Assembly (NCBI GenBank): GCA_946965045.2
Contig: OX337233.1
Span: forward strand, 558,001-622,000
DNA from: Epithemia pelagica
Lineage: Eukaryota; Protista; Bacillariophyta
Length of the DNA: 64,000 nt
Direction: 5' to 3'
The notes below the pieces were generated by a model. It saw only the letters and a list, made by a program, of their open reading frames with translations, had not been told where the DNA came from and did not search any database. Each line of letters opens with the position of its first letter. Position 1 is the stretch's first letter. Shown here piece by piece: positions 9,562-64,000 of this stretch. Made by a program: the position numbers and the translations under genes.

Positions 9562-11453
9562 ATGCAGGAAGAAGCGAGATTGTCAAATCTTGTCTCTGCT
9601 GACGCGGAGAAAGATGGATTGCCGCAATGGAAGTCCGACTCGTGGCCTCCGCTTTTGGGTGGATCGCGCTGTTCTCATGCATCGGTTATTGTGAATGGCG
9701 AGAACAAGGAACAACAGACAATCGTAGTCATTGGAGGAGAAACAGCAAAGGCCGAAACAAATTCGGTGTTGTTGATGGATTTGGACAAGGACAAGAAGGA
9801 ATGGAGGGAAGGTCAAAGCCTGAATCAAAATCGACTTGATCACGCAGCAGTTGTTTGTAATGGCTCTGTGTACGCAATTGGGGGAGGCTGTAATGGTAAA
9901 CGTCTGGATTCAATCGAGCGGATTGATCTTTTGCATTTGTGGAAATCACCATGTGCTACCAACAACAAGACGCATTGGAAGAAATTGACTTGTATATTGT
10001 CCAATACAAGAGACTATTGTCAAGCTGCTGTGGTACACAATCGTTTTATTGTGGTCGTCGGTGGACAAGACGATTGCGACTCCTTCTCGTCGACTGATAT
10101 CATTGATACGGCAGTGCAAACTCAACACAGTGTCATTCCAGGACCTTCCATGACGGTTCCTCGATCTTGCTGTGGAATGGCCGTGGTTGGAAATCGCATC
10201 TTTGTCATTGGTGGGCACAATCAATATGACTATTCCGATCTTAACTCCGTCGAATATTTGGATTTCTTTGATACTTATGAAGAGATCCATGAGGATATGA
10301 GTTCTGTCTTTCCTTCATCGTCGAAATGGAAAGTGCACAAGGATTTGGTCCTTTCTGTCCCTCGGAAGAAACCTGCTGTTGCAAAAGTCGGGACCTGTCT
10401 GATTGTGACTGGAGGTAGAAAAATGAAAACTTTGAAGTCAGTAGAAGTATTGGACACAAAGCGCAACATCGTGTTCAACATACCTGATATTACCGTGAGG
10501 CGGGACGGTCCTAGTCTGGTATCATTCTTTGAAAGGATCGATGTCATTGGAGGGTTTTGTCAGGTACGTATGAGACACTCGCACTGAGTGATACACCGGA
10601 ACACCCCCAGGTGTGGCGTTTCTTGCAGTAAGAATTGGCTTTGATATCGCAAGGGAGTGGAGAAATAACTGTTTCAAATATTGTTGTTCTGTTCTCTTAC
10701 GACGCTTTGGTGCTCTTCTTTTCAAAGAGATCTCAAAACATGTATTCGTGTCGTGCTGAGCTCGACATGGAACTTGAAAAAATGAAGAGTAAGATTCAAC
10801 TTGCAAATAGGGATCGTAGCAATGTGAAGGCGCTGCAAGAGGCCATTGATGCGGAATGCTTGCTACCGGTGATGGAAAATCTTCGAGATGAGGATGACAA
10901 GTTCCGCTCTGTACATGATCTTCAAGAAACTATTGACGAACTGAAAGGGAAGCTGCAGGATATGGACAGTTTAGCGGGGTGTCTTCCAATTGCTCGCAAG
11001 ATTGAAGAGCTACAAAAGCTTGTCGACTTGAATGGCAGGTATGGAGATGAAAAGCGCCTTGCTGGTCTGAAAACAGATGTTGAGGCTGAATCCGGTTCGG
11101 TGACCGGAAAGGAAACACTGCCCGTGTCGGAACGTACAACTCTTGAGCTTGTCGACTTGAATGTAAGTGTTGGAGATGAAACGAACCTTGCTGGTCAGAA
11201 AGCAAAGAATGAAAAGAACCTTGCTGGTCAGAAAGCAAAGGATGAGTTTGAATTCGTGTCGGTGACCGGAAACAAAACACTACCAGTGTCCGGCCGTTCT
11301 ACTGATGAACTCTCGAATGCTTGTTATAATCCCGAAGAACGACTTAGGAAACTGGAAGATATGATGATTGAACAAAGAAACATGATGGCTCAACTTGAAG
11401 ATATGATTGTTCAACTTTCTGATCGGGTTGGTGTGCTTGAGAAGACGAACTAG
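9562..11453 (+). CDS. Kelch-repeat (6 blades) + coiled-coil protein K1; exons 9562-10563 and 10728-11453
   Basis: GG-containing Kelch blades (VIGG, AIGG, VVGG, VIGG, VTGG, VIGG with W/Y anchors); cag|GTACGT donor and ttcaaAG| acceptor join in frame. Confidence 0.8.
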
Positions 11454-22792: not shown

Positions 22793-24487
22793 ATGCATGA
22801 ACAAGCAAGATTGTCCAATCTTGTCTTTCCTGACACGAGCAAAGATGAAGTACCACAATGGAATTCTGGTTCGTGGCCGCCACTTTTGGGTGGGTGGCGC
22901 TGTTCTCATGCATCGGTTATTGTGAATGGCGAGAAAAAGGAACAACAGACAATCGTAGTCATAGGAGGAGCTACAGCCAAAGGTGCCACAAATTCGGTGT
23001 TGTTGATGGCTTTGGACAAGGACACGAAGCAATGGAGAGATGGTCCATGTCTGAATCATAATCGTGCATGTCATGCAGCAGTGGTTTGTAATGGCTCTGT
23101 GTACGCAATGGGGGGAGGCTCTAAAGAACATCGTCTGGATTCCATAGAGCGGATTGATCTCGTAGCTTTGTTGAAGTCACCATGTACTACCAACAACACG
23201 AACCCTTGGAGGACATTGACTTGTACATTGTCCACTCCAAGAGGCGGATGTCAAGCTGCTGCGGTAAACAACCGTTTTATTGTGATTGTCGGTGGATACA
23301 ATGGAAGCTTCTTGTCGTCGACAGATATTCTTGATACGGCAGTGCAAACTCAACACATTGTCACTCCAGGCCCCTCCTTGACGATTCCTCGATCTTCATG
23401 TGGAATGGCTGTTGTTGGTAATCGCATCATTGTCATTGGTGGGCACAATGAAAGTCGTGCACTTAATTCCGTCGAATATTTGGACTTTATCGATACTTCT
23501 CAAGAGACCAATGAGGATGTGGGTTTCATCTTTCCTTCATCATCGAAATGGAAAGTGCACAAGGATCTGGTCCTTTCTGTCCCTCGAACGCAACATGCTG
23601 TTGGGAAAGTCGGGAGCTGTTTGATTGTGACTGGAGGCAAAACCAAGAAAGCTTTGAAGTTGGTAGAAGTATTGGACACGAAGCGCAACGCCGTGTTCAA
23701 CATACCTGATATGACCACGAGGCGGAACGGTCCTAGTCTGGTATCATTGTCTGACATGATCGCTGTCATTGGAGGGTTTCGTCAGGATACGTGTGAGACG
23801 CTCGCACTGAGTGACACACTTGAACACACCCAGGTACGGCGTTTGTTGCAGAAAGAATTGGTTGTGATATCGCAAGGGACTGGAGAAATTATTGTTTCAA
23901 ATATTGTTGCTCTGTTCTCTTACGACACTTTGGTGCTCTTCTTTTCAAAGACATCTCAGAACATGTATTCGTGTCGCGCTGAGCTCGACATGGAACTTGA
24001 AAAACTGAAGAGTAAGATTCAACTTGCAAATAGGGATCGTATCAATGTCAAGGCGCTGCAAGAGGCAATTGAGGCGGAATCCTTGCTGTCTTTGTTGGAA
24101 GGTCTTCGAGATCAGGATGACAAGTTCCGCTCTGTACATGAGCTTCAAGAAACTATTGACGAACTGAAAGGGAAGCTGCAGAATATGGACAGTTTGGCGG
24201 GGTGTCTTCCAATTGCTCGCAAGATTGAAGAGCTACAACGTCTTGTCGACTTGAATGGCAGTTATGGAGATGGAAAGAACGTTGCTGGTCAGAAAGCAAA
24301 GGATGAGTTTGAATTTGTATCGGTGACCGGAAACGAAATCCTACCAGTGTCCGGCCGTTCTTCTGATGAAGACTCGAATGCTTGTTTTAACTTGGAAGAA
24401 CGACTCATGAAACTGGAAGACATGATGGTTCAACTCTCTGATCGGGTTGGTTTGCTTGAGAATCCAATGCTCTCGAAGAAGACCTAG
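22793..24487 (+). CDS. Kelch + coiled-coil protein K4; probable intron 23834-23950 (117 nt, stop-free)
   Basis: Continuous 564-aa ORF; intron position inferred from paralogues. Confidence 0.88.
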   Translation: MHEQARLSNLVFPDTSKDEVPQWNSGSWPPLLGGWRCSHASVIVNGEKKEQQTIVVIGGATAKGATNSVLLMALDKDTKQWRDGPCLNHNRACHAAVVCNGSVYAMGGGSKEHRLDSIERIDLVALLKSPCTTNNTNPWRTLTCTLSTPRGGCQAAAVNNRFIVIVGGYNGSFLSSTDILDTAVQTQHIVTPGPSLTIPRSSCGMAVVGNRIIVIGGHNESRALNSVEYLDFIDTSQETNEDVGFIFPSSSKWKVHKDLVLSVPRTQHAVGKVGSCLIVTGGKTKKALKLVEVLDTKRNAVFNIPDMTTRRNGPSLVSLSDMIAVIGGFRQDTCETLALSDTLEHTQVRRLLQKELVVISQGTGEIIVSNIVALFSYDTLVLFFSKTSQNMYSCRAELDMELEKLKSKIQLANRDRINVKALQEAIEAESLLSLLEGLRDQDDKFRSVHELQETIDELKGKLQNMDSLAGCLPIARKIEELQRLVDLNGSYGDGKNVAGQKAKDEFEFVSVTGNEILPVSGRSSDEDSNACFNLEERLMKLEDMMVQLSDRVGLLENPMLSKKT

Positions 24488-25270: not shown

Positions 25271-25272
25271 TA

Positions 25273-31323: not shown

Positions 31324-31385
31324 TTCTCGCAACGTCTCCATACGAAGTATATATATCTATAGTAATATATAAAAGCCAATATAGT

Positions 31386-38075: not shown

Positions 38076-38586
38076 GGAAAAAGGTGTGGCGTGATGGTAT
38101 AAAGAGATATATGAGAGTTGGTACTACCAAATATAAATTTGTAATAGTTCTTTCGTCAACCTCTCCTCTTTGTGGTGTGTCTGTCTCTATGTATAAATAT
38201 ATAGATCTCGTCTCTCTCTCCATCTCTCATGTCCCGCGACGATCCATATCACACAAAAACGATGTGGTAACTGAATAGTTTAACAGAATAAAGAGTTCAA
38301 TATAATCGGTTGATTGCTTCGATTAATATTAACCGGTTAGATGATGCCTCTGATGACTGACTAATAATGAGAGGTGACAGATTAAATATCTTATCGACTG
38401 AATAGCTTGAGCAGTTAGGCGTTCCGGGTTAACTGATTATATTTTACTTACCGATTATTAACTGGATTGGTGATTTTCTGTCAGAATAAGAGAATATGGT
38501 TAACCGAATGAGGTTTGGGGGGCTGGTTTTTATAAAGAGTTTTAAACTGTCACTATTGACTGTATAAGTTAAACTGTTGGTAAACG

Positions 38587-38607
38587 GTTTGGAAATGACT
38601 TGCAGTG
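38587..38607 (-). repeat. Right TIR
   Basis: gtttggaaatgacttgcagtg, reverse complement of the left end. Confidence 0.93.
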
Positions 38608-38970
38608 TAACCGAAGAGACACGGTGCGAGGATCAAAAGCGTCGGACGATGAACATGTGGGATCCCAAACGTTGGTGGATACATGAAACACACTGTGTCT
38701 CAACGAAGCTCAACGGTTCGTGGAGTTACTGCGTAGGCGATTGTGAATGAGTGCTTCACGTCAAAAGTTGACGAGATGGCTAGGTAGCAATGTTGCGTTC
38801 TTCGAATGTGGGATCCAAAAAATGTAGGTGGATATTTGACACGGTTCGTGGAGACACTACGCCGGAATGAGAGCTTTGCATCAAAAGCTGATATGCCAAA
38901 GCAATGTTTCACATCACAGCAGATCATTTTCTTCGACACACTTTCTTTTGTTTCCGATCATCAAAGGAAG

Positions 38971-40746
38971 ATGCAAGAACAAGCAAGATTGTCCAATCTT
39001 GCCTTTCCTGACACCAACAAAGATGAAATGCCACAATGGAAGTCCGACTCATGGCCGCCGCTTTTGGGTGGATGGCGTCGGTATCATGCATCGGTTGTTG
39101 TGAATGAAGAGAAAAAGGGACAACAGACAGTCGTTGTCATTGGAGGACAAAAAGCAGAGTTGCTCGTCACAAATTCGGTGTTGTTGATGGATTTGGAAAG
39201 GTGGCGAAAAGGTCCAAGCTTGAATCAACATCGTGGTGGACTTGCAGCAGTGGTTTGTAATGGCTCTGTGTACGCAATGGGGGGACGCTGCGATGGCCAA
39301 CTTCTGGATTCAATCGAGCGGATTGATCTTTTGGATTTGTTGAAATCACCATGTGCTACCAACAACAAGACGCATTGGAAGACATTGACTTGTACATTGT
39401 CCACTCCAAGAGACGGATCTCAAGCTGCTGTGGTACATAATCGTTTTATTGTGGTCGTCGGTGGAGATAATTACAGCTTCCTGTCGTCGACTGATATTAT
39501 TGATACCACAGGACAAAATCAACACATTGTCATTCCAGGCCCTTCCATGACGGTTCCTCGATATTTGTGTGGAATGGCTGTTGTTGACCATCGCATCTTT
39601 GTCATTGGTGGGATGAAGCAAGGTTCCAAATTAAACTCTGTCGAATACCTAGACTTCAGTGAAGTTTCTCATGACAACAATGAGGATGTGCATTTCAGCT
39701 TTCCCTCATCGTTTCAATGGAATGTCCACAAGGATCTGGTCCTTTCTGTTCCTCGGTATGCACACGCTGTTGCGAAAGTCGGGACGTGTCTCATTGTGAC
39801 AGGAGGTGATTCCGAGAAAACTTTGAAGTCAGTTGAAGTATTGGACACGAAGCGCAACGTGGTGTTCAACTTACCTGATATGATCGTGGAGCGGAAGGCT
39901 CATAGTGCGGTTTCATTTTTGGACCGAATTGTGGTCATTGGAGGCACGAAGAAGACATGTGAGTCGCTTGCATCGATTGACATGAAGGAAAACACCAAGG
40001 TACGATCTTGTTATCACAAGCCACTGAAGGAACCGCTTTCCTACATTCTCACAACCGTTTCGTGCTGTTTCTTCGCGCAGAGTCTCCAGAACAGGTATTC
40101 GTGTCGTGCTGAGCTCGACATGGAACTTGAAAAAATGAAGAGTAAGATTCAACTTGCAAATAGGCATCGCAGCAATGTCAAGGCGCTGCAAGAGGCCATT
40201 GAGGCGGAATCCTTGCTGCCTCTGATGGAATGGCTTCGTAACCACGACGACAAGTTCCGCTCTGTACATGAACTTCGAGCAGGTATTGACGAACTGAAAG
40301 GGAAATTGAGAGATATAGATAGTTTTATGGGGTGCCTACCAATTGCACGCAAGATTGAAAAACTACGACAGCTTGTCGACTGGAATGAGAGTTTTGGTGA
40401 TCAAAAGAACCTTACTGAACAAGAAGCAGAGCTTGAGGTTGAAGCCGGTTCAGTGACAGGAAAGGAAACACTGCTGGTGTCGGAACGTACCACTCGTGAG
40501 TTTGTCGACTTGAATGTCAGTTTTGGTGATGAAAAGAACCTTGCTGGTCAGAAAGCAGAAGATGAGTTCGAATTCGTATCGGTGACCGGAAACGAAACAC
40601 TACAAGTGTCCCGTCATTCGACTGATGATCTCTCGAATGTTTCTTATAACCCGGAAGAACGACTGATGAAACTGGAAGACATGATGGTTCAACTTTCTGA
40701 TCGGTTCGGTGTGCTTGAGAATCTAGTGCTCTCGAAGAAGAACTAG
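38971..40746 (+). CDS. Kelch + coiled-coil protein K6; probable intron 40000-40080 (81 nt, stop-free)
   Basis: Continuous ORF, six blades, two 43-aa tail repeats. Confidence 0.88.
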   Translation: MQEQARLSNLAFPDTNKDEMPQWKSDSWPPLLGGWRRYHASVVVNEEKKGQQTVVVIGGQKAELLVTNSVLLMDLERWRKGPSLNQHRGGLAAVVCNGSVYAMGGRCDGQLLDSIERIDLLDLLKSPCATNNKTHWKTLTCTLSTPRDGSQAAVVHNRFIVVVGGDNYSFLSSTDIIDTTGQNQHIVIPGPSMTVPRYLCGMAVVDHRIFVIGGMKQGSKLNSVEYLDFSEVSHDNNEDVHFSFPSSFQWNVHKDLVLSVPRYAHAVAKVGTCLIVTGGDSEKTLKSVEVLDTKRNVVFNLPDMIVERKAHSAVSFLDRIVVIGGTKKTCESLASIDMKENTKVRSCYHKPLKEPLSYILTTVSCCFFAQSLQNRYSCRAELDMELEKMKSKIQLANRHRSNVKALQEAIEAESLLPLMEWLRNHDDKFRSVHELRAGIDELKGKLRDIDSFMGCLPIARKIEKLRQLVDWNESFGDQKNLTEQEAELEVEAGSVTGKETLLVSERTTREFVDLNVSFGDEKNLAGQKAEDEFEFVSVTGNETLQVSRHSTDDLSNVSYNPEERLMKLEDMMVQLSDRFGVLENLVLSKKN

Positions 40747-44119: not shown

Positions 44120-45831
44120 ATGCAAGAACAAGCGAGACTTTCCAAACTTGTCTTTCCTGACACGAACAAAGATGAAATGCCACAATGGAAATCCGACTCA
44201 TGGCCACCGCTTTTGGGTGGATGGCGTAATTTTCATGCATCGGTTATTGTGAATGGCGAGAAAAAGGAACAACAGACAGTCGTTGTCATTGGAGGAGATA
44301 CAGCAAAGGACCCCACAAATTCGGTGTTATTGTTGGATTTGGACAAGGACACGAAGGAGTGGAGGGTAGGTCCAAGCCTGACTAAGAAACGTCGTGGACA
44401 TGCAGCAGTGGTTTGTAATGGCTCCGTTTACGCATTGGGAGGATATTGTACTAAACGTTTTCTGAATTCGATAGAGCGGATTGATCTTGTTGATTTGTTG
44501 AAGTCACCTTGAACTACCAACGACAAGAAGCATTGGATGACATTGGAATGTACATTGTCCACACCAAGAAGTGCTTGTCAAGCTGCTGTAGTACATGATC
44601 GATTTGTTGTGGTCGTTGGTGGATACAATGGAGAATGCTTGTCATCTACTGATATCATTGATACGGCAGAACAAACTCAACACACTGTGATTGCAGGCCC
44701 TTCCATGACGACTCCTCGATCTTTGATTGGAATGGCCGTTGTTGGCCATCGTATCTTTGTCATTGGTGGGTACACTGGAAGTTCCAGATTAAACTCTGTC
44801 GAATACTTGGACTTCATCGAAGCTTCTAAAGAGACCAATGAGGATTTGAGTTTTATCTTTCGTTCATCGTTGAAATGGAAAGTCCACAGGGATCTGGTCC
44901 TTTCTGCCCCTCGGTATTCACATGCTGTGGCAAAAGTCGGGACCTGTCTGATTGTGACTGGAGGTAGTACCGATGAAATCGTAAAGTCAGTAGAAGTATT
45001 GGACACAAAGCGCAACGTGGTGTTCAACATATCTGACATGATCGTGGAGCGGAAGACGCATAGCGTGGTTTCATTGCCAGACGGAATTGCTGTCATTGGA
45101 GGGCTTCGTGAAGAGAGCTGCGACACGCTCTCAGTGATGGACATGAGCGAACACACCAAGGTACGGTGTGGCTGTTGCAGTATGAATTGGTTTTGATATC
45201 GCAAGGGACTTGAGAAACTGATTCGACAGATTGGCATAGAGATCCCTTACGACGATTTCGTGATATGTTCTTTTTTCACAGAATCTCCAGACCAGGTATT
45301 CGTGTCGTGCTGAGCTCGACATGGAACTTAAAAAAACTCAACAGCAAGATTCAACTTGCAAATAGGGACCGTAGCAATATCAAGGCGCTTCAAGAAGCCA
45401 TTGAGGCGGAATCCTTGCTACCCGTCGTGGAAAATCTTCAAGATCAGGATGACAAGTTCCGCTCTGTACATGAGCTTGAAGAAACGATTGACGAGCTGAA
45501 ATGGAAGCTGCAGGATATGCACAGTTTGGCAGTGTGTCTTCCAATTGCTCGCAAGATCAAAGAGCTGAAAAACCTTGTCGACTTGAATGTCAGTTTCGGT
45601 GCTGGTTCGAAAGCAGATGTTGAGGATGAATCACGATCATTGACCGGAAACGAGACACTACCAGTGTCCAACTGTGCTACAGATGAACTCTCGAATGCTT
45701 GCGATGATCCCGAAGAGCGATTTATGAAACTGGAAGATATGATGATTGAACAAAGGAACATGATGGTTCAACTTTCCGATCGGGTTGGTCAACTTTCTGA
45801 TCGGGTTGGTGTGCTTGAGAAGAAGAACTAG
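44120..45831 (+). pseudogene. Kelch + coiled-coil copy K7 (nonsense at 44510-44512, +1 frameshift in exon 2)
   Basis: KSP*TTNDKK where paralogues have KSPC/S; extra A in atggaacttaaaaaaactc. Confidence 0.85.
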
Positions 45832-49222: not shown

Positions 49223-49728
49223 CACGCCGGGCATGACGTATGATCACTCGCAGCTTAACGGTTGTACGCATCACGAGATGCAACACGCCACTGACGCGAC
49301 GATTTGTGACCACACCGAACACCGAAACGATCAACACAAACACGGCGCGTAAATCGTTGTGATACATACAAGACAAAACAACATGTGGGATCCCAAACGT
49401 TGTGGTGGATACATGAAACACGCTGTGTCTCAATGAAGCTCAACGGTTCGTGGAGTTACTGCGTAGGCGAATGTGAATGAGTGCTTCACGTCAAAAGTTG
49501 ACGAGATGCCTAGGTAGCAATGTTTCACATCAAAAAATGAGCTATCAAAATCGCTTTCTTCGAATGTGGGATCCAAAAAATGTAGGTGGATATTTGACAC
49601 GGTTCGTGGAGACACTACGCCGGAATGAGAGCTTCGCATCAAAAGCTGATATGCCAAAGCAATGTTTCACATCACAGCAGATCATTTTCTTCGACACACT
49701 TTCTTTTGTTTCCGATTATCAAAGGAAG

Positions 49729-51406
49729 ATGCAAGAACAAGCGAGATTGTCCAATCTTGCCTTTCCTGACACCAACAAAGATGAAATGCCACAATGGAAG
49801 TCCGACTCATGGCCGCCGCTTTTGGGTGGATGGCGTCGGTATCATGCATCGGTTGTTGTGAATGAAGAGAAAAAGGGACAACAGACAGTCGTTGTCATTG
49901 GAGGACAAAAAGCAGAGTTGCTCGTCACAAATTCGGTGTTATTGATGGATTTGGAAAAGGACACGAAGCAATGGAGGGAAGGTCCAGGTCTGAATCAAAA
50001 TCGTGCATTTCATGCAGCAGTGGTTTGTAATGGCTCTGTGTACGCAATTGGGGGCGGCTGTGATGGCCAACGTCTGGATTCAATCGAGCGGATTGATCTT
50101 TTGGATTTGTGGAAATCACCATGTGCTACCAACAACAAGACGCATTGGAAGAAATTGACTTGTACATTGTCCACTCCAAGAGGCGGATGTCAAGCTGCTG
50201 CGGTAAACAACCGTTTTATTGTGATCGTCGGTGGATACAATGGAAGCTTCTTGTCGTCGACAGATATTCTTGATACGGCAGTAAAAACTCAACACATTGT
50301 CACTCCAGGCCCTTCCTTGACGATTCCTGAATGGCTGCTGTTTGTCACCGCATCTTTGCGATTGGAGGGTCCAATGGAAGCTCCGATCTTAACTCCGTAG
50401 AATATTTGGATTTCATTGAAGCTTCTCAAGAGACCAATGAGGATGTGGGTTTCATCATTCCTTTATCATCGAAATGGAAAGTGCACAAGGATCTGGTCCT
50501 TTCTGTCCCTCGAACGCAACATGCTGTTGGGAAAGTCGGGACCTCACTGATCGTGGCAGGAGGTGGTACCGTCAAAGCTTTGAAGTCGGTAGAAGTATTG
50601 GATACAAAGCGCAACGTCGTGTTCAACATACCTGATATGACTGTGTGGCGGAAGGGTTGAAGTCTGGTATCATTGTCTAACAAGATAGGTGTCATTGGAG
50701 GGTTTGGTCAGGATAAGTGTGAGACGCTCGCACTGAGTGACACCCAGGTACGGCGTTTGTTGCAGAAAGAATGGGTTGTGATATACCACAAGCGAATGGA
50801 GCAAGAATTGTTTCAAATATTGTTGTTCTGTTCTCTTACGACGCTTTGGTGCTCTTCTTTTCAAAGAACAACTTTCAGAACATGTATTCGTGTCGTGCTG
50901 AGCTCGACATGGAACTTGAAAAACTCAATAATAAGATACAACTTGCAAATAGGGATCGTAGCAATGTCAAGGCGCTGCAAGAGGCCATTGAAGCGGAATC
51001 CTTGCTGCCTTTGTTGGAAGGTCTTCGAGATCACGACGACAAGTTCCGCTCTGTACATGACCTTGAAGCAGGTATTGACGAACTGAAAGGGAAGTTGCAG
51101 GATATGGAGAGTTTAGCGGGGTGTCTTCCAATCGCTCGCAAGATTGAAGGGTTACAACATCTTGTCGAGTTGAATGGAAGTTATGATGATGAAAAGCACC
51201 TTGCTGGTCAGAAAGCCAAGGATGAGTTTGAATTTGTATCGGTCACCGGAAACGAAACACTACCAATGTCCGGTCGTTCTACTGATGAAGACTCGAATGC
51301 TTGTTTTAACCCGGAAGAACGACTTATGAAACTGGAAGACATGATGGTTCAACTTTCTGATCGGTTTGGTGTACTTGAGAATCTAGTGCTCTCGAAGAAG
51401 AACTAG
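49729..51406 (+). pseudogene. Kelch + coiled-coil copy K8 (about 13-nt deletion near 50328, TGA at 50658-50660)
   Basis: attcct|gaatggct lacks cgatcttcatgtg of the paralogues; WRKG*SLV versus RRKGCSLV. Confidence 0.85.
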
Positions 51407-51855
51407 AGGTCCATTTGCCATTTCGAGACGGCGGACCAGGTCCATTCTGTCATGTTTGTGATCTTAGCATTACGACCACATATTACGTCTTCCTAGTATA
51501 AAGTGATGAAATGTCCAACTCTTGCGTGTTGTTTGAAATAACGACAATGATTGCTGTGTCGTATTTACCTCAATTCCTTGAAGGGAATGGAGGTGGAGCA
51601 CTATAAGATACAGGGTCGGAACTCCTCTTGTCGTTTCCGTGGGCGGATTTCGATTATATATGTGTGTGTTGGTGGTTCTCCGGTGGAACAATAGAGGGTG
51701 GAACAATAGAAGGTACAGCGTTCCAACAGCTCGTCTCACGTGGGCGGAATTTGATCATAAAGGTGTGTGATGGTGGTGGTTCTGTGGGGCACTTTATAGA
51801 GAAAGAGAAAGACATTTGTCGTTTTCAGTGTTTGGCCGTTAGCAAGAAAGATCGT

Positions 51856-53048: not shown

Positions 53049-53179
53049 GGAAAAAATTGGATCATTGTCACGAAATGTCTGTGAATTGGATCTTCCGTCT
53101 GTCCATCTGTCAAGATACGACTCGCGTTTAGGTCGCTTGCTTCAAGGAAAGATACCTTTTTTGTGTGCAAAGATGAAAG

Positions 53180-53450
53180 ATCCAAACGAAAGCAATAAAA
53201 GAGATGTCATGAAGATGCGATGGTGTTTTGATTATAGTCGCCACTTTCCTGGCACCGGCTGTCGCCATATTCTTGTGTTGCGAATGGTACGGTCGTCCCC
53301 TCATGCAAGCCTGATACGACTCCGATTGAGCCTCGCTCGCATTGCAAGAATGCGTCCAACGACATCTCTCACACAACACGAAGAGTTGTAGATTGTCACA
53401 AGGCCTATATTGTGTGGCGACCATGGCAACACGTTTCTTGAGGAAACCAC
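53180..53450 (+). pseudogene. Remnant of the shared CEWYGR domain (FAS1-family 5' part)
   Basis: gaatggtacggtcgtcccctcatgcaagcc at about 53282 matches 21474-21500 and 13634. Confidence 0.55.
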
Positions 53451-54130
53451 CATCTTTACCATCTCAGTGGTCCATATCGTTCTGTCTTGTGCGATGCGAG
53501 AATACCCAATCCTCCATCCAAGAAGAAGGCCACAGTACCCTTCTCTCCTTCCACAAGTACTAAAACCAAGAAAATCCATCTCTGGGTGAAGCGACATCCG
53601 TTCCTTGCAAGACGCGTTGGATCGATGCATGTGCCGTTTTGGGTCGCTCCACGATCGAACATCCATTCACGATCCATACCTCCACTGTGAAATGTTGCCT
53701 TGTGTATGACTGATCGCTCAGTGCCAGCCAGTTCGATCCATTCCACGCTGGTCCGATGCACACTTGCAACAGTTCCACGGCTGTGGTAAAGCGCGTGACG
53801 AGATGCCACACGCCATTTCAGCAAGAGAGATGAGGTGATGCTTGGCGACCATAACCATCAAACCGATCCAACAAACACGATGCGTGGATCATTGATGAAG
53901 AGAAACGAAAGCAGCGGACACAGGTGGGATCCAAAGCATTGGTGCAACGCATCACTGTGTATCAAAAAACATCACCGTCCATAAATGAAGCTCCACGCTT
54001 CGTGGAGAGCCTACGGAGGCGATTTCGTTTGGGTGTTTCGCATCGAAAGCAATAATTCACATCAAAAACCAGCTATCCACATCGCTTCCTTTGACCCACT
54101 TTTTCTTGTGTTGCCACATATCAAAGGATC

Positions 54131-56190
54131 ATGCAAGAAGAAGCGCGATTGTCCAATCTTGTCTTTTCTGACACGGGCAAAGATGAAACGCCGCAATGGA
54201 AGTCCAACTCATGGCCGCCGCTTTTGGGTGGATATCGTTATTTCCCTGCATCCGTTGTTGTGAATGGCGAGACAAACGAAAAAGAGACAGTCGTTGTCAT
54301 TGGAGGATATACTTTAAACGGCGCCACAAATTCGGTGTTGCTGATGGATTTGGAAAAGGAGACAAAGGAGTGGAGGGAAGGTCCAACCCTGAAACAACCT
54401 CGTGGTGGACTTGCAGCTGTGGTTTGTAATGGCTTTGTTTACGCATTGAAAGGCTATTGTAAGGGTCGTTTTCTGAATTCAATAGAGCGGATTGATCTTG
54501 AAGATTTGTTGAAGTCACCATCTACTACAAATGACAAGAAGCATTGGACTACATTGAACTGTCAAGTATCCACATCAAGATGCGGATGCCAAGCTGCTGT
54601 GGTACACAATCGTTTTATTGTGGTCGTTGGTGGATACAATGGAAGTCACTTGTCGTCGACTGATATTATTGATACGGCAGAGCACACTCAACACATTGTC
54701 GTTGCAGGCCCTCCCATGACGGTTCCTCGATTTGTCGGTGGATTGGCGGTTGTCGGTCATCGCATCTTTGTCATTGGTGGCAACGATGGAACTTCCGCTC
54801 TCAAGTCTGTTGAATATCTGGAATTCATGGAATCATCTTCTGAGACCAATGATGACGATTTGAGTTCTGTCTTTCCTTCATCGTCAAAGTGGAAAGTTCA
54901 CAAGGATCTCGTCCTTTCTGTCCCTCGCATGGAACATGCTGTTGCCAAAGTAGGGACTTGTCTGATTGTGACTGGAGGTAAACCCTTTAATTCTTCACAA
55001 TCAGTAGAAGTATTGGACACAAAGCGCAACGTGGTGTTCCACATACCTGTTATGAACCAGGAGCGGTCTGCTCATTGTGCGGTTTCATTCACGCACGGAA
55101 TTGTTGTCATCGGAGGGAAGTATACGAAAACCTGTGAAACGCTCTCATTGATTAACGTGCAGCAACTTTTCAAGGTACGGTTTTGTGTCATCGCAAAAGG
55201 GACAACTTTTGTTTTAAAGATTGTTGTATTGTTCTCATACGACAATTTCGTGATTTTTTTTCAAAGACATTCCAGAACATGTTTTCGTGTCGTGCCAAGC
55301 TCAACATGGAAGTAGAGAAACTCAACGGTAAGATTCAACGTGCAAATAGGGATCGCAGCAATGTCAGAGTGCTGCAAGAGGCCATTGAGGCCGAATCCTT
55401 GCTGCCTTTGATGGAATGGCTTCGTGATCACGACGACAAGGTCCGCTCTATCCAGGAGCTTCACGAAGTTATTAATGAAATGAAAGGAAAGTTACAGGAT
55501 ATGGATAGTTTGTCGGGGTGTCTTCCATTTGTTCGCAAGATTGAAGAGCTACAACGGCTTGTCGACTGGAATGAGAGTTTTGTTGATGAAAAGAAGCTTG
55601 TTGGTCCGAAAGCAGATGTTGAGACTCAGTCCGGTTCGGTGAGCGGAAAGGAAGCACTACCGTTGTCGGAACGTACCACTCGTGAGCTTGTCAATTTGGA
55701 TGAGAGTTTTGTTGATGAAAAGAAGCTTGTTGGTCAGAAAGCAGACATTGAGACTGAGTCCTGTTCAGTGAGCGGAAAGGAAATACTGCCGGTGTCGGAA
55801 CGTTCCACTATTGAGCTTGTCGACTCAAATGAAAGTTTCGTTGATGAAAAGAACCTTGCTGCTCCGAAAGCAGATGTCAAGACTGAGTCCTGCTCGGTGA
55901 GCGGAAAGGAAACACTACCGGTGTCGGAACGTACCACTCTTGAGCTTGTCGACTTGAATGGGAGTTTTGTTGATGAAAAGAACCTTGCTGGTCGGGAAGC
56001 AGAAGATGAGTTTGAATTCGTATCGGTGACCAGGAATGAAACACCACCAGTGTCCGGCTGTTCTACTGATGAACTTTCGAATGCTTGTGATAACCCGGAA
56101 GAACGAGTTATGAAACTGGAGGACATGATGGTTCAACTTTTGGATAGGGTTGGTGTGCTTGAGAATCTTATGCTCTCAAAGAAGAACTAG
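54131..56190 (+). CDS. Kelch + coiled-coil protein K9 with four 43-aa tail repeats; exons 54131-55174 and 55267-56190
   Basis: Six blades; 92-nt GT-AG intron restores frame. Confidence 0.87.
55558..56073 (+). repeat. Four tandem 129-bp (43-aa) coding repeats
   Basis: cttgtc starts at 55558, 55687, 55816 and 55945. Confidence 0.93.
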
Positions 56191-56618
56191 GTCCATTTGC
56201 CATTTCGAGACGGCGAACCAGGTCCATTCTGTCACGTTTGTGATCTTTTCGCATTCCGACCACAGATTACGCCTTCCTAGTATAAAGTGATGAAATGTCA
56301 AACTCTTGTGTGTGGTTTGAAATAACGACAATGATTGCTTTGTCGTATCTTCCTCAATTCCTTTAAGGGAATGGAGGTGAAACACTTCTTGAAGGTACAG
56401 AGCCGGAACACCTCGTCTTCGATCATATAAATGTGTTGGTGGTCTCACGTGGAACCATATATGGTACAGCGCTGGAACACGTCGTCTCCAGTGGGCGGAA
56501 TTCGATTAAAAGGTGTGTGTTGGTGTTGGTTCGCTATGAGACGCCAGAGAGAGGTATTTGTCGTTTCCCGTGTGTGAGTGTTGTTGTTCGTGGATTGACA
56601 AGAGCCAACAGAGATCGT

Positions 56619-57655
56619 TTACCACACTTTCCACCACGGACGACGATGTGGTGGATCGTTGGTAGTATTGTTGTTGTTCGAGACGGGTTTTGTTGGTGTC
56701 GTCGTCGTCGTTGGCGTGTCGTTCGCGTCGCCGTTTTTGTCCTTGTTGTCGAGACGATTCGTTGTGACGTCGTCGTCCTTTGGGGGGCGGGGCTTGTCCA
56801 TGAAGTGGGTGCTACTTCTGCTGCTGTTGCGGGGTTGTAGTGCTTCACGGGTAGAAGGTGGCGATGGCACGGTCGTCGTCGTCGTAGTGGGGTGATAAGG
56901 ACCCAAGAATGGAAGACAGAGTTTTTGGGTCTTTAGGAATCATGGTTTTCATGTGATTCGTGCCTTGCTGCCACAAGTCGTGCATCTACCCGGAGGGTTG
57001 CTTCCTTGTTCGTGTTCCAATTGTCTCTTTTTTCGTTTGTGATACTTGACTTGTTCGGCCTTGTCCAGGGCGAGGAGCCATTGATCGCGTTCCTCGAGGG
57101 TCTGTTGTTGTTCTTCGACTTGACCGCCTCCAGTGGTGGGAATGACCATGGGCATATTTGTATTGGTGGTTGTATTTGAAATACTTGGAGTACTCTTGCT
57201 ATGGTCATCGTCGGCAAAGATGAGATCGCCACTCGTCATGACTTGTATCGATGAGGATGGAGAATTAAGTGGTGCCGAAGTTTGTCGTTGTTCTTATTTT
57301 TGATGGGCCAATCGCGTTGAAGTAAGACGGACAGAGAAGAAGATAGGTGCAGTGCACCGACGAGCGATTTGTAGTTGGGTGCGATTTTTTGTGTATCGAG
57401 AATGCGATGCCCGTTTGTATATCGACTTGATAATCTGCATCCTACGTCCTCAAAATGGGTTGACGGACCCATTGGAAGCGACTGTAAGCCGTATCCAATC
57501 TTTGTTGGACCATGCCAGCCGTTGTCCCTGTAGCATTGAATTGCACACATGCCGTTTTGGCTTAGACGATTACTTTGGCATAACCCTACAGGTACAAAGA
57601 GTCGTCGTTCATGTGATGGTGGCAAGGACGACGACGGCATCGTCCAGAGTGACAT
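56619..57655 (-). pseudogene. RRPWWKVW family copy P6, internally deleted
   Basis: MSLWTMPSSSLPPSHERRL start at 57655; ends HHRPWWKVW at 56619; several frames. Confidence 0.7.
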
Positions 57656-58196
57656 GGTTATCCCAAAGAAGAGAAAGGATCATTGAAACGACGGTCATGG
57701 TGATCTGATGGATCTTTCGTCTGTCCATCTATCAACCGCTTAGTCGCGTAGCGGTCTCTTCAAGACGAAATGCTTCCACATTCCGCAGTGCCAGCCGGCA
57801 CCATGCACGCCGGGCATGGCGCATGATCACTCGCAGCTCAACGGTTGTACTTGTCACTTTTTGTGACCGACAGCGAACTGAGCAACAGACAATGAACACA
57901 TAATATATGTCTGGGATCCCAAACGTTGGTGGATACATGAAACAAACGGTGTCTCAATGAAGCTCAACGGTTCGTGGAGTCGGTTTTGGATTATTGCGGA
58001 AGCAATGTTTCACATCAAAAACTGAGCTCCAAATCGCTTTCTTCGATGGCACCCAAAAGGTCAACGAAGCTCCACGGTTCGTGGACCGGAATGAGAGCTT
58101 CACATCAAAAGCTGACATGAGCAATGTTTCACTTCCAAACATGATCATTTTCTTCGACACACTTTATTATTGTGTTGCCAGCTCTATCAAACGACC

Positions 58197-59865
58197 ATGC
58201 AAGAATTCTATCAAAGGATGATGCAAGAAAAAGCGAGATTATCCAATCTTGCCTTTCCTGAGACGAACTACGATCAAATGCCACAATGGAAGTCCGACAC
58301 ATGGCCGACGCTTTCGGGTGGATTGCTCCGGGTTCATGCATCGGTCGTTGTGAATGAAGAGAAAAAGGGACAACAGACAGTCGTTGTTATTGGAGGACAT
58401 AAAGCAAAGGGTGCCACAAATTCGGTGATGTTGATGGATTTGGAAAGGTGGCGAAAAGGTCCAAGCTTGAATCAACATCGTGGTGGACTTGCAGCAGTGG
58501 TTTGTAATGGCTCTGTGTACGCAATGGGGGGACGCTGCGATGGCCAACTTCTGGATTCAATCGAGCGGATTGATCTTTTGGATTTGTTGAAATCACCATG
58601 TGCTACCAACAACAAGATGCATTGGAAGGCATTGACTTGTACATTGTCCACTCCAAGGGACGGATGTCAAGCTGCTGTGGTACATAATCGTTTTATTGTG
58701 GTCGTCGGTGGATATAATTTCAGCTTGTTGTCGTCGACTGATATTATTGATACGGCAGGACAAAATCAACACATTGTCATTACAGGCCCTTCCATGACGG
58801 TTCCTCGATATTTGTGTGGAATAGCTGTTGTTGACCATCGCATCTTTGTCATTGGTGGGATGACGGAAGGTTCCAAATTAAACTCTGTCGAATACCTGGA
58901 CTTCAGTGAAGTTTCTCATGGCAACAATGAGGATGTGAATTTCAGCTTTCCCTCATCGTTTCAATGGAAGGTCCACAAGGATCTGGTCCTTTCTGTTCCT
59001 CGGTATGCACACGCTGTTGCGAAAGTCGGGACGTGTCTGATTGTAACAGGAGGTGATTCCGACAAAACTTTGAAGTCAGTTGAAGTATTGGACACGAAGC
59101 GCAACGTGGTGTTCAACTTACCTGATTTGACCGTGGAGCGCGAAGCTCATAGTGCGGTTTCATTTTTGGACAGAATTGTTGTCATTGGAGGCTCGAAGAA
59201 GACATGTGAGTCGCTTGCATCGATTGACATACAGGAAAACACCAAGGTACGATCTTGTTATCACAAGCGACTGGAGGAAGCGCTTTCAAACATTCTCACA
59301 ACCCTGTTTCTTCTCGCAGAGTCTCCAGAACAGGTATTCGTGTCGTGCTGAGCTCGATATAGAACTTGAAAAAATGAAGGGTAAGATTCAACTTGCAAAC
59401 AAGGATCGCAGCAATGTCAAGGCACTTCGAGAGGCCATTGAGGCGGAATCCTTGCTGTCTCTGATGGAATGGCTTCGTAATCACGACGACAAGTTCCGCT
59501 CTGTACAGGAACTTCGAGCAGGTATTGACGAACTGAAAGGGAAGTTGCAGGATATGGACAGTTTGGCGGGGTGTCTTCCATTTGCTCGCAAGATTGAAGA
59601 GTTAAAAAACCTTGTCAATTTGAATGTCAGTTTTAGTGATGAAGAGATCCTTGTTGGTCAGAAAGCAGAGTTTGAGGTTGAATCCGTATCAGTCACCGGA
59701 AACGAAACACTACCAGTGTCCATCCGTACCACAGATGATCTGTCGAATGCTTACGCTGGTGATACGAAACTGGAAGATATGATAATGGAACAAAGGAACA
59801 TGATTGTTGAACTTTCTGATCGGGTTCGTTTGCTTGAGAAGAAAAGAACTTGGTCCATTTTGTGA
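58197..59865 (+). CDS. Kelch + coiled-coil protein K10; exons 58197-59246 and 59320-59865
   Basis: Six blades; 73-nt GT-AG intron restores frame; start region duplicated (ATG 58197/58218/58221). Confidence 0.86.
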
Positions 59866-62289
59866 CGGAGAACTAGTTGTCTTGGTCCATTTTGTGATGT
59901 TCGATGTATAGGCATAATACGATCACAAATTAATTTATGTCAAATTTCTACTTGTTTGATGCGGTTGGGCCCAAATCCCAAGTCGTCACTTTCGTGTAGA
60001 GCCGGATGCCATTAGGTGATCTTGAAGTCATCGATGGTTTCTTCTTTTGCTTTTGCAGCTACGTGTGAAATTCATACCTGCACAGATTCTTGTCGAGGCA
60101 CAGTGCCACAACAGTCAGCCAACGTGTGCACTTAAGCCCATTGACTATCCCCCATCACAAACTTAGACTCATATTCGACAACCACTCATTCTATCTCTAT
60201 TGTGTCATCCAGCATCCAGCATGTCTACGAATATAACCAAGATCTTGTGTTGCGTGGATCTAATGAGAAGATCCTTCAAGTGTGGTGCTATGGTGATTCA
60301 ATGACCACTCTTTATTACCCGTCGCCAATGCAAGACGACTGTATTCTTGTCTTAACTACATCCATTCCCTCCTTTGTTGTAGTAGTGTGGTAGTTAAATA
60401 CATTGAAGAGTACCACGGGTCCACCGTTTCTCATACCAAACGACATGTACAGACTCGTTGATGGAAAACATACTACTGATGAATGTGAACCCATCAAGGA
60501 AAATCTCGCCAGAATGTTTCGTATTCAAAATTATTTCTCTACCTGTGTGGTGGATGAAACAGAGTGGTCATTGTCGCGGGGTGCTGTGGAATCACCGCCA
60601 CTCGACACAAACAGAGAACGAAGCGGACGATGCAATGATGGTAGTTGTTGTTGAAGTAACCGTTGAAAGACGGCCGTATTCTTGTCGGTCAAGGGCAAGT
60701 ACTCACTCAAATCTTGACCCCAACCCGAAAGACACAAAATACCACCTTGGCCACCACTACTGTTGGAACAACAAGAAGATGAAGAAAGGATGACCATGTC
60801 ATGTTGGGATCACCCACATGTCAAACTGGGTCCAGTCCATACCGTGTGGCGTTAACGGAGCGTGATTCCCAAACTCGCCAATCCTGACATCCTTCCGAGA
60901 CAAGGAGACAAGATCCCACTTTTACCACAGCATGATTGTATCGAGGTTGGGTCAAGGCTAGCTTTGGGTGGATCCTCCAACTGTCCGAGAAGGAGGATTC
61001 ATTCGCTTTTGTAGTAGTAGTCGAAGGAGTCTCCTGGAGGTGTGTGTTGTCCTTGTTATTGCCTTTTTGAAACCCAAACGCGCTGTCGTCAAAGTCCCAA
61101 TACTCGATGGACTGCAACAAGCTGTCGTCCGTCGGTGCGAGACTCCGTCTTCCACCGACAGCATAGAGACGCGACCCCACAACGGCGAGTCCCAATTGAT
61201 GCCGACGTACGGTAAGGGGTGGACCTTGCAACACCCTCCCGTGAACAGTATCTAGAATTTCCACGGACGACACGAGTCCTCCCGATTTCTGACGTCCCCC
61301 CACGACCACAATATATCGATCGTGCACCGTGGCCGCAGCGCATCCGTACCGGGCCTCCACCAAGCGACACTGCATCGTTTCCCAGGTGGTCGTCTTGTTG
61401 CTTGGGTCGTATTTGTTTGGTTCTGCCGGAAGGGTAGTAGTTATTGTTGTTGTTGCCCATATTATCAAGTCGGCAATGGTAATGCGTTCAATGGTATTCC
61501 ATGTGATAAATCCAAGAGAAATGCCTCCCAGAATGACATGTTTGTCATAGACCAATTCCTTGGTGGAAATATTGGTAATGCCGTGACTGGATTTTTCGCC
61601 ATTGGGCAATTTCAAGAGAGGATCAAAGTCCAGCCAATTCTCGTCTTGCGACATTCATGTTTGGTCCCTGCATCCATTCGTTTCGAGTTCTAGTCTTCCA
61701 ACAAGGCAACAGTATCACTGTATTGGTGGCATAGTCATTGGCGTGTTTGCCGCCCATGAGCACCACCAGCTGGTCGTGTTGAGGATTGTATGGTTCCTGA
61801 ACAACAACCGATGCATGGCCATAGCGCCGTCCACCTGCCAGGGGAGGCCATTGATTGGGATCAGCCTGCCATTGCGCTTGTGATTGTTGTTGTTGTTGTG
61901 ATGATGAAGATGAGCCCAGAAAGGCAAGGCCCGACAATTCCGCTTGCTGATGATGATAATTCTCCTCATTCATGGCATGATATCCTTTGAAGCGTGCTGT
62001 GCTGGCCATTGGGATCGCTGTGGGAGGCCAATTCCCAGAAACTATTCCTTCCAAAATGTGGCGGTGTCTCGCTCCACGATTCGAAAAGTATAAGGCGTGA
62101 CTGTTTTCTGTTCACCTCGTCCGGCGTTCTGCACGGCTCAATATGCTGTGTTCGCAGTGCCAGACGGCGCCATGCACGCCGGGCATAGCGTATGATCACT
62201 CGCAGCTCAACGGCTGTACGCGTGCCGAGATGTTGCAGGCCATCACTGTGACGTGACGAATTGCGACCGGCACCGAACCGAGAGCGTAA
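59419..62289. repeat. Segmental duplicate of 25273-27689 (continues as 62289-62890 versus 38608-39200)
   Basis: Collinear Kelch tail, spacer, type-B Kelch and upstream block; contains the empty TA site of the DNA transposon. Confidence 0.9.
60531..61973 (-). pseudogene. Type-B Kelch copy KB2 (disrupted by a replaced segment at about 61531-61632 and later frameshifts)
   Basis: ORFs 61623-62054 and 60821-61654 are two halves of the KB1-like protein. Confidence 0.72.
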
Positions 62290-62649
62290 CCGAAGAGACA
62301 CGGTGCGAGGATCAAAAGCGTCGGACAATGAACATGTGGGATCCCAAACGTTGGTGGATACATGAAACACACTGTGTCTCAACGAAGCTCAACGGTTCGT
62401 GGAGTTACTGCGTAGGCGATTGTGAATGAGTGCTTCACGTCAAAAGTTGACGAGATGCCTAGGTAGCAATGTTGCGTTCTTCGAATGTGGGATCCAAAAA
62501 ATGTAGGTGGATATTTGACACGGTTCGTGGAGACACTACGCCGGAATGAGAGCTTTGCATCAAAAGCTGATATGCCAAAGCAATGTTTCACATCACAGCA
62601 GATCACTTTCTTCGACACACTCTCTTTTCTTTCCGATTATCAAAGGAAG

Positions 62650-64000
62650 ATGCAAGAACAAGCAAGATTGTCCAATCTTGCCTTTCCTGACACCAACAAA
62701 GATGAAATGCCACAATGGAAGTCCGACTCATGGCCGCCGCTTTTGGGTGGATGGCGTCGGTATCATGCATCGGTTGTTGTGAATGAAGAGAAAAAGGGAC
62801 AACAGACAGTCGTTGTCATTGGAGGACAAAAAGCAGAGTTGCTCGTCACAAATTCGGTGTTGTTGATGGATTTGGAAAAGGACACGAAGCAATGGAGGGA
62901 AGGTCCAAGTCTGAATCAAAATCGTGCATTTCATGCAGCAGTGGTTTGTAATGGCTCTGTGTACGCAATTGGGGGAGGCTGTAATGGTAAACGTCTGGAT
63001 TCAATCGAGCGGATTGATCTTTTGCATTTGTGGAAATCACCATGTGCTACCAACAACAAGACGCATTGGAAGAAATTGACTTGTACATTGTCCACTCCAA
63101 GAGGCGGATGTCAAGCTGCTGTAGTACATGATCGATTTGTTGTGGTCGTTGGTGGATACAATAGAGAATGCTTGTCGTCGACTGATATCATTGATACGGC
63201 AGAACAAACTCAACACACTGTGATTGCAGGCCCTTCCATGACGACTCCTCGATCTTTGAGTGGAATGGCGGTTGTCGGTCATCGTATCTTTGTCATTGGA
63301 GGGTCCAATGGAAGCTCCGATCTTAACTCCGTAGAATATTTGGATTTCATTGAAGCTTCTCAAGAGACCAATGAGGATGTGGGTTTCATCATTCCTTTAT
63401 CATCGAAATGGAAAGTGCACAAGGATCTGGTCCTTTCTGTCCCCCGAACGCAACATGCTGTTGGGAAAGTCGGGACCTCACTGATCGTGGCAGGAGGTGG
63501 TACCGTCAAAGCTTTGAAGTCGGTAGAAGTATTGGATACAAAGCGCAACGTCGTGTTCAACATACCTGATATGACCACGAGGCGGAACGGTCCTAGTCTG
63601 GTATCATTGTCTGACATGATCGCTGTCATTGGAGGGTTTCGTCAGGATACGTGTGAGACGCTCGCACTGAGTGACACACTTGAACACACCCAGGTACGGC
63701 GTTTGTTGCAGAAAGAATTGGTTGTGATATACCAAGCGACTGGAGAAATAATTGTTTCAAATATTGTTGTTCTGTTCTCTTACGACACTTTGGTGCTCTT
63801 CTTTTCAAAGACATCTCAGAACATGTATTCGTGTCGCGCTGAGCTCGACATGGAACTTGAAAAACTGAAGAGTAAGATTCAACTTGCAAATAGGGATCGT
63901 ATCAATGTCAAGGCGCTGCAAGAGGCAATTGAGGCGGAATCCTTGCTGTCTTTGTTGGAAGGTCTTCGAGATCAGGATGACAAGTTCCGCTCTGTACATG
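62650..64000 (+). CDS. Kelch + coiled-coil protein K11, runs off the window; probable intron 63694-63810
   Basis: ATG 62650 is in frame with the cag|gtacgg donor; absent from the ORF track because it has no stop within the window. Confidence 0.85.
   Translation, partial: MQEQARLSNLAFPDTNKDEMPQWKSDSWPPLLGGWRRYHASVVVNEEKKGQQTVVVIGGQKAELLVTNSVLLMDLEKDTKQWREGPSLNQNRAFHAAVVCNGSVYAIGGGCNGKRLDSIERIDLLHLWKSPCATNNKTHWKKLTCTLSTPRGGCQAAVVHDRFVVVVGGYNRECLSSTDIIDTAEQTQHTVIAGPSMTTPRSLSGMAVVGHRIFVIGGSNGSSDLNSVEYLDFIEASQETNEDVGFIIPLSSKWKVHKDLVLSVPRTQHAVGKVGTSLIVAGGGTVKALKSVEVLDTKRNVVFNIPDMTTRRNGPSLVSLSDMIAVIGGFRQDTCETLALSDTLEHTQVRRLLQKELVVIYQATGEIIVSNIVVLFSYDTLVLFFSKTSQNMYSCRAELDMELEKLKSKIQLANRDRINVKALQEAIEAESLLSLLEGLRDQDDKFRSVH

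Follow-up and report, generated by a model that had tools for sequence, protein, structure and literature searches.

The 64,000-nucleotide stretch of the diatom Epithemia pelagica analyzed here (GenBank assembly GCA_946965045.2, contig OX337233.1, here C6, contig positions 558001-622000, forward strand; hereafter the window) carries an array of Kelch genes, in which the gene designated K11 lies at the 3' end and continues past the end of the window. BLAST searches of the window with the K11 region recovered ten relatives, K1-K10, arranged head-to-tail at 76-92% identity, and a search of the whole genome (60.5 Mb, 23 contigs) added further copies to either side of the window, another cluster on contig C11, and many distant ones. 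A protein search of the same 60-Mb genome returned 909 first-look candidates, and all 116 of the 116 that were scored had E values below 1e-88 and were mostly open; the Kelch family of this genome is therefore very large. A preliminary description made from the letters of the window alone had proposed that K11 is a patchwork of other copies, including pseudogenes. Here we argue that K11 was produced by a tandem duplication followed by three non-allelic conversions into it, that is, by ordinary interlocus gene conversion, an explanation to which we assign a probability of roughly 0.85.

The K11 Gene and Its Predicted Protein

The genomic open reading frame (ORF) at K11 extends from 62485 to 64347 (L001:1386-3248), encodes 620 amino acids (aa), passes the window end, and reads through an intron that is open in frame by chance in both K11 and K4. 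The start codon at 62650, the coordinate from which the preliminary description also starts, is aligned in all copies, and upstream of this ATG the copies lose in-frame alignment. The donor site (AG/GTAC at 63693/63694) and the pyrimidine tract with its AG are likewise conserved in all copies, and the interior of the intron is rich in indels and stops. Of four public sequencing runs, available as short unitigs, only the run designated X4 contains the GT..AG joint 63693/63811 (L001 2594/2712). The depth of X4 is zero in intergenic bins and reaches 4555 in the gene, and we infer that this run, whose type is not on record, is RNA. Together, the conserved splice signals and the X4 joint therefore define two exons separated by a 117-nt phase-0 intron (Table 1). 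Two more spliced joints with extra letters were observed in the same run (window 63677-63816, L001 2578-2717), fitting copies that carry a 12-bp deletion before the donor site. One of the two carries K8-type exon-2 letters, and it appears that the K8 pseudogene yields a spliced transcript.

Protein searches were run with either exon 1 or the unspliced read-through ORF as query. Within the 620-aa ORF, Pfam identifies Kelch_1 (E 5.9e-35), Kelch_6 (1.7e-19), and a KLHDC2/KLHL20 domain (1.6e-25), and the GG doublets and W/R residues expected of Kelch repeats of ~47 aa are invariant among 55 relatives. An AlphaFold2 model of exon 1 (predicted local distance difference test, pLDDT, 90.6; predicted template modeling score, pTM, 0.91) folds into a closed propeller of six four-stranded blades, and Foldseek matches this predicted model best to designed symmetric SAKe Kelch proteins and to the Kelch domains of KEAP1 and KLHL12. 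The Pfam scan of the 620-aa ORF found Kelch families only, with no BTB/BACK or F-box domain, and ~35 residues precede blade 1. Family members very probably share this layout, a Kelch propeller of six blades with a coiled coil behind it. We consider it very probable that K11, whose frame is intact and which appears to be transcribed, belongs to a very large lineage-specific family organized in head-to-tail arrays.

Under this gene model at least 12 of the 20 copies in the array are intact, namely K11, K4, K3, K14, K6, K9, K10, K12, K13, and three upstream copies. K8 has lost 13 bp and acquired a premature stop (TGT>TGA), which disable it, and K7 is broken by an in-frame stop and a 1-bp insertion, lesions that bear out the pseudogene status first proposed for both. 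A 109-bp deletion breaks K2. In K1 the loss of 1 bp close to the exon 1 end truncates the gene, and the splice sites are altered, to GTGT at the donor and CAA at the acceptor. Three further upstream copies are also broken.

Mosaic Structure of K11

A 60-bp sliding comparison reveals that the nearest relative of K11 switches abruptly along the gene. Exact-match runs pair K11 62328-62878 with K6 38649-39199 (130 + 147 + 240 bp), K11 62477-62975 with K8 49556-50054, and K11 63295-63575 with K8 50361-50641, and K11 matches K8 again from 64159. Set into this K8-type sequence are three tracts of other affinity, S2, S3, and S5 (Table 1). Their closest relatives are best seen alongside K8 and aX, a counterpart on what is taken to be the second haplotype of this individual (see below). 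S2 has no differences to K1, 5 to K8, and 6 to aX. S3 has 2 differences to K14, 9 to K7, 11 to the other-haplotype K14 (aK14), 47 to K8, and 37 to aX. S5 has 6 differences to K4, which it matches in exact runs of 179 + 321 + 92 bp, 9 to the K4 allele, 74 to K8, and 70 to aX, while K8 and aX differ from each other by 6. A K8-type island at 63731-63770, within the intron, interrupts S5, and reflects either a discontinuous tract left by patchy heteroduplex repair or two events. Tract borders fall in stretches of 5-26 bp common to donor and recipient, as homologous repair predicts.

Tests for recombination were applied across the copies. The pairwise homoplasy index (PHI) test gave z = -25, and 0 of 1000 permutations reached the observed value. 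The longest concordant runs of polymorphic sites exceed the null maximum for K4 (152 against 52), K6 (119 against 39), K1 (72 against 47), and K14 (37 against 31), site permutation finds a run beyond the null for K7 as well, and triplet tests return p <= 5e-5 for K8xK4 and K8xK14. In segment trees K11 groups in turn with K8/K6, K1, K14/K7, K8, and K4 at 98-100% support (100/100 in S3), and approximately unbiased (AU) tests reject alternative placements, such as K11+K8 in S3 (p = 5e-34). The PHI, run-length, triplet, and AU tests thus reject a single tree, and together with the exact-match runs they uphold the proposal that K11 combines several copies. That K11 is a DNA-level mosaic formed by exchange among paralogues is very probable.

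The borders given in the preliminary description hold to within ~10 bp for the K1-like stretch (62945-63084, here 62944-63085; in K1 9855-9994, here 9853-9994) and the K8-like stretch (63298-63574, here 63295-63575; in K8 50364-50641, here 50361-50641). The K4 match it reported is confirmed, but starts at 63552 in K11 and 23692 in K4 rather than at 63575 and 23716. Its source for S3, the pseudogene K7, is rejected as donor, as the intact K14 fits better (2 differences against 9). Its blade-by-blade exchange is likewise rejected: S2 approximates blade 2, but the tract ends within the propeller lie at residues 99, 146, 153, 217, and 302, mostly inside blades, and the K4-type tract S5 leaves the propeller for the coiled-coil exon.

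Signals of exchange extend beyond K11. Across the array, 43 of 118 copy pairs have p < 0.05, and K11 takes part in five of the ten strongest; mosaicism pervades the array, with K11 as the most recent example. At other places in the array, too, alleles are told apart by patches matching other paralogues, and conversion therefore still runs on a population time scale.

Table 1. Coordinates of K11, its tracts, and related features (window positions unless stated).
Feature	Position	Strand	Description
K11 exon 1	62650..63693	+	348 aa, predicted six-bladed Kelch beta-propeller; Pfam, AlphaFold model, Foldseek
K11 intron	63694..63810	+	117 nt, phase 0, GT..AG
K11 exon 2, coiled-coil tail	63811..64347 (beyond window end at 64000)	+	ORF; frame preserved across joint
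Tract S2, K1-type	62944..63085	+	minimal core 62976-63025, 5 informative sites; most of blade 2 including B-C loop
K1 part matching S2	9853..9994	+	142-bp exact match
Tract S3, K14-type	63106..63299	+	minimal 63122-63294; blade 3 and first two strands of blade 4
K14 part matching S3	window-equivalent 76766-76959 (outside window)		best match, intact gene
K7 part resembling S3	44576..44726	+	second-best match, pseudogene
Backbone S4, K8-type	63300..63551	+	unconverted; rest of blade 4, most of blade 5
Tract S5, K4-type	63552..64184	+	minimal 63576-64158; last strand of blade 5, blade 6, whole intron, ~370 bp of exon 2
K4 part matching S5	23692..24324	+	intact gene, donor type
K8, sister copy of K11	49553..51793	+	ancestral sequence kept, disabled
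Younger tandem-duplication unit K11-K12-K13	62474-73171	+	paralogous to 49553-59720 (K8-K9-K10)
K6 5' end	38649..39199	+	identical to K11 and K8
Tail insertions, exon 2	K9, about 55557-56003; K12, L017:3076-3837		

The K8-K11 Duplication and the Direction of Transfer

K11 is part of a unit, K11-K12-K13, that Megablast aligns to the K8-K9-K10 unit at 94-97% over 10.7 kb, the two copies lying ~12.9 kb apart. Background divergence between the K8 and K11 blocks is 0-3 mismatches per 100 bp over these 10.7 kb, and peaks of 10-16 per 100 bp occur solely in the K8/K11 gene body, at 63087-63287 and 63587-64182. Because background divergence is low over the whole 10.7 kb, the K8 matches in K11 represent shared descent rather than donation. 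K8, initially counted among the sources of patches, is instead the segmental-duplication twin of K11. The unconverted segment S4 has 1 difference to K8 in 252 bp, and the 10 kb downstream of K11 is collinear with the K8 block. Upstream, the flank of K11 (60026-62288) matches the spacer ahead of K6 (25906-27689), and a CACTA transposon (27690-38607) sits between that spacer and K6. K6 itself is a hybrid preceded by the spacer type found upstream of K11: its 5' part is of K8/K11 type and its 3' part of K10/K13 type. It probably originated as a single-junction hybrid by unequal crossover.

A second haplotype is available in the public record. In the ENA assembly ERZ21939226, contig ctg1334l, which encodes the exact K11 protein, is 100% identical to the window sequence over the 21.9 kb compared and belongs to the same assembly, so it is not independent. 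Two further contigs, ctg1292l and ctg1300l, align to the array at 93-98%; the genome assembly contains no place identical to them, and they are taken as the other haplotype of the same individual. The order of copies on this haplotype is aK1, aK2, aK3, a contig break, a hybrid copy, aK4, a spacer, aX, aK12, aK13, aK14, and the array end; both the 10.9-kb CACTA transposon and the stretch K6-K10 are missing from it (window 27690-62288 compared with ctg1292l). From K3 to the array end there are ~6 copies on the other haplotype and 12 on the assembled one. These differences suggest unequal crossover and a transposon in the hemizygous state.

These haplotigs allow the haplotype comparison that the preliminary description had called for, and the direction of transfer, which it held to be unreadable from one haplotype, becomes readable, as the sister K8 and the other-haplotype aX are both unpatched. 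Over 2358 downstream intergenic columns, divergence is 0.76% for K11-K8, 2.88% for K11-aX, and 2.54% for K8-aX, and aX is the odd one out at 55 sites, against 13 and 5; the tree is therefore ((K8,K11),aX). Neither K8 nor aX carries the foreign sequence of S3 or S5. In S3 the foreign tract replaces a K4-like ancestral sequence still present in both, and no other copy is near the K8/aX type in S5, so that K8 and aX were not themselves converted there. The patched form has no counterpart on the other haplotype of this individual. Because the sister K8 and aX keep the ancestral state, parsimony clearly identifies K11 as the recipient of the K14-type (S3) and K4-type (S5) tracts. K11 is also nearer to the K14 and K4 of its own haplotype than to their alleles (2 against 11 differences, and 6 against 9). 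Judged from sequence comparison, the S3 and S5 donors are on the same haplotype as K11 and both events are younger than the duplication.

For S2, the aK1 allele carries the S2 type at an ordinary allelic distance (4 in 142), and the K11-K8 distance within S2 is four times the K11-K8 background. The direction K1 to K11 is favored by these comparisons, though not proven. The converse direction, K11 to K1, was dropped, given that the aK1 allele already has the S2 type.

Origin of K11 and Alternative Explanations

A tandem duplication of ~10.7 kb made K11-K12-K13 from K8-K9-K10, and three stretches of K11 alone were afterwards very probably replaced by sequence from non-allelic copies within its own array and chromosome. 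The contributions are up to 142 bp, probably from the truncated K1, 53 kb upstream, ~190 bp from K14, 14 kb downstream, and ~600 bp, discontinuous, from K4, 40 kb upstream. K8-type sequence flanks each tract on both sides, and by keeping its own flanks at every tract K11 records non-crossover events. The exchange presumably proceeded by repair of DNA breaks templated by a paralogue (synthesis-dependent strand annealing) with patchy mismatch correction, in the course of ordinary, unprogrammed germline or mitotic recombination, and selection may retain useful new loop combinations. A preprint records frequent mitotic recombination in diatoms (bioRxiv 10.1101/2020.11.08.373134). Rescue of a pseudogene by conversion was rejected as an account of K11. 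The stop and 13-bp deletion of K8 are private to K8 and the lesions of aX are different ones (a 3-bp insertion and a 31-bp deletion), and the common ancestor was therefore probably intact.

Several observations weigh against this account of K11. The segments used for trees and AU tests were picked after inspecting the data, so their p-values are generous. The AU test of K11+K8 in S5 is only borderline (p 0.051), because K8, K4, K3, and K1 form one clade there. Polarity in S2 depends on five sites, and read-level support covers the S3 junctions only. Finally, the K11-private letters at 62622, 62629, and 64313, unique among the aligned copies, are absent from the contigs of four runs, which show the family-wide letter; these may reflect a strain difference, haplotype dropout, or small consensus errors.

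The last of these points also favors an assembly or polishing artefact, by which a truly K8-like K11 had its consensus altered by mis-mapped K1, K14, and K4 reads. The array is highly repetitive, ~27% of sampled K11-region 31-mers are missing from the best run, and the identity of ctg1334l adds no independent support. The reads were checked as short Logan unitigs from four runs of one study, in which contigs drop rare variants; a letter absent from contigs is not evidence of absence. At eleven places in K11 the runs show alternative letters, all of them K8 letters, most simply explained as K8 unitigs aligned to K11. A 284-nt unitig of run X4, by contrast, matches 63092-63375 with 0 differences and crosses both S3 junctions, so that the junction 31-mers exist in reads. 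The tracts are also clean over 140-630 bp, the frame of K11 is intact whereas the K8 and aX types are broken, and like mosaics separate alleles on separately assembled haplotigs, all of which leaves an artefact very improbable. Reciprocal unequal crossing-over acting alone is scarcely more credible as the builder of K11. It has shaped copy number if the ~6 and 12 copies of the two haplotypes are a guide, and K6 resembles a single-junction hybrid behind K11's spacer type, but six or more precisely nested crossovers would be required to place K8-type flanks around each tract of K11 and leave the downstream 10 kb collinear with the K8 block. No exchange of flanking markers was seen at the tract borders, and the discontinuity of S5 is typical of heteroduplex repair.

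Programmed diversification, whereby expressed Kelch genes would receive copies of silent or pseudogene cassettes within the lifetime of a clone, is comparably improbable, although it speaks to several features of the locus. The array mixes intact and broken copies, the converted stretches carry hypervariable ligand-face loops, K11 figures in five of the ten strongest pairwise signals, and one probable donor, K1, is truncated. To this last extent the pseudogene-templated conversion suggested in the preliminary description is retained, but K4 and K14, two of the three donors, are intact genes, and pseudogene templating is not the rule. A single expression site is not supported, as most copies are intact and the spliced products in the RNA-like run X4 derive from several copies, including one of K8 type. 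Blade borders do not confine the tracts, one of which extends through the intron into the tail. No dedicated cis element was noticed in passing, no aimed search having been made. The events are fixed haplotype differences of roughly 1% age rather than clonal variation. For these reasons (most copies intact, several apparently transcribed, ordinary genes as donors, and fixed germline differences between haplotypes), a programmed combinatorial library like that of chicken immunoglobulins or trypanosome variant surface glycoproteins (VSGs), as first suggested for the array, finds no support.

Duplication followed by ordinary interlocus conversion thus remains the preferred explanation, and K11 provides a clean, polarized, and dated diatom case, in which three donor tracts entered one gene while point mutation yielded a divergence of 0.76%. 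Two haplotypes of one cell line differ in their mosaics and copy numbers. Searches of the literature for Kelch arrays in diatoms, or for conversion among Kelch genes, turned up no pertinent paper.

Consequences for the Kelch Propeller

Compared with the K8/aX type, the K11 protein carries 31 amino-acid changes, and all of them fall in the tracts (3 in S2, 19 in S3, and 9 in the exon-1 part of S5), with none in unconverted segments such as S4. At the nucleotide level, the tracts hold about 125 of the roughly 135 differences between K11 and its sister copy. The most variable positions of the family are the 5-7 residues that follow each GG doublet, in the B-C loops, and the 3-4 residues that precede strand A, in the D-A loops, and 12 of the 31 changes fall at such positions. 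Propellers of the KEAP1 type use these two sets of loops as their ligand face.

The ratio of nonsynonymous to synonymous substitution rates (dN/dS) is 0.83 in the variable loops, a set partly chosen by variability, and 0.36 elsewhere. The ratio in these loops thus stays below 1, and its value suggests relaxed or mixed selection; positive selection is not demonstrated. In these arrays recombination, not mutation, makes new propeller surfaces. We hypothesize that the array encodes an evolving repertoire of binding surfaces reshuffled by conversion. A bolder and rather unlikely extension is that the hundreds of Kelch plus coiled-coil genes make up a germline recognition repertoire (for viruses, parasites, bacteria, or self and non-self), whose ligand surfaces are renewed mainly by interlocus conversion, with broken copies as a reservoir. 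Such a reading fits because conversion supplied every protein change of K11, and if true, the repertoire would be a propeller-based counterpart of plant nucleotide-binding leucine-rich repeat (NLR) clusters. The conversion mechanism itself is textbook, and the larger question is what this huge family binds.

Further Features of the Array

The expansion of the family in this genome includes C11:2.37-3.04 Mb, C6:0.07-0.39 Mb, and contigs C9, C10, C13, C2, and C8, and is densest over ~0.7 Mb on C11. The deletion in K2 (window 15004-16600) is found only on the assembled haplotype; the other-haplotype allele (L047:15869-17730) is free of it and has a 394-aa open exon 1, and K2 is therefore a pseudogene that is polymorphic within one individual. 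Within the spacer upstream of K11 and K6 (60821-61654, reverse strand; paralogous spacer 25270-27689), a 277-aa ORF on the opposite strand has weak Kelch matches, and is a different, much more diverged Kelch-like gene inside the array.

The coiled-coil tail varies by in-frame insertions relative to K11, which amount to 129 bp in K6, K13, and one upstream copy, 162 bp in K1, 387 bp in K9, and 645 bp in K12, where the inserted sequence repeats about every 129 bp. Given this variation of 129-645 bp, the tail grows and shrinks independently of the propeller. At the other end of the window, positions 1-7451 and ~2.2 kb upstream (C6:555809-565451) form a segment without counterpart on the other haplotype (L047). 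This segment contains a 1499-aa RVT_2 (Copia-type) ORF at 2650-7149, together with part of the K1 3' half in inverted orientation, 97.9% identical to 10145-11360. The other haplotype has a Copia-like insertion of its own (L044:1015-5785).

Comparison With Known Systems

The K11 propeller resembles the Kelch domains of KEAP1 and KLHL proteins (PDB 4n1b, 2vpj, and 8rbh, among others), with six blades, template modeling (TM) scores of 0.77-0.83 by target length, and 21-25% identity, the K11 side of the comparison being a predicted model. The B-C and D-A loops that make up the ligand face of those proteins are the variable ones of the K11 family. Unlike KLHL proteins, K11 has no BTB or BACK domain, carries its coiled coil after the propeller, and has an N-terminus of only ~35 residues; it is therefore not a KLHL-type Cullin-3 adaptor.

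Programmed pseudogene-templated conversion is known from the chicken immunoglobulin light- and heavy-chain loci (IgL/IgH), Trypanosoma VSG, Borrelia vlsE, and Neisseria pilE/pilS. As in those systems, archive segments have been pasted into an intact gene and a variable surface has been altered in K11. Unlike them, K11 lacks a single expression site and a set of donors that are all silent, and shows no sign of somatic or clonal timing. An arrangement of one expressed acceptor with silent donors was not found, given the intact state of at least 12 of 20 copies, K4 and K14 among them.

Closer parallels lie in tandem clusters, and interlocus gene conversion is known in plant NLR/R-gene clusters and in major histocompatibility complex (MHC), killer-cell immunoglobulin-like receptor (KIR), opsin, and globin arrays. 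K11 and its array share with these clusters short non-crossover tracts between diverged paralogues, mosaic genes, tree incongruence, and haplotype-specific patches, as well as pseudogenes acting as donors and recipients and the reshuffling of variable ligand-contact residues. They differ in the host, a diatom, and in the fold, which is a Kelch propeller with a coiled coil rather than a leucine-rich repeat or immunoglobulin fold. Particular to K11 is that a sister duplicate and a second haplotype together make the direction of conversion readable.

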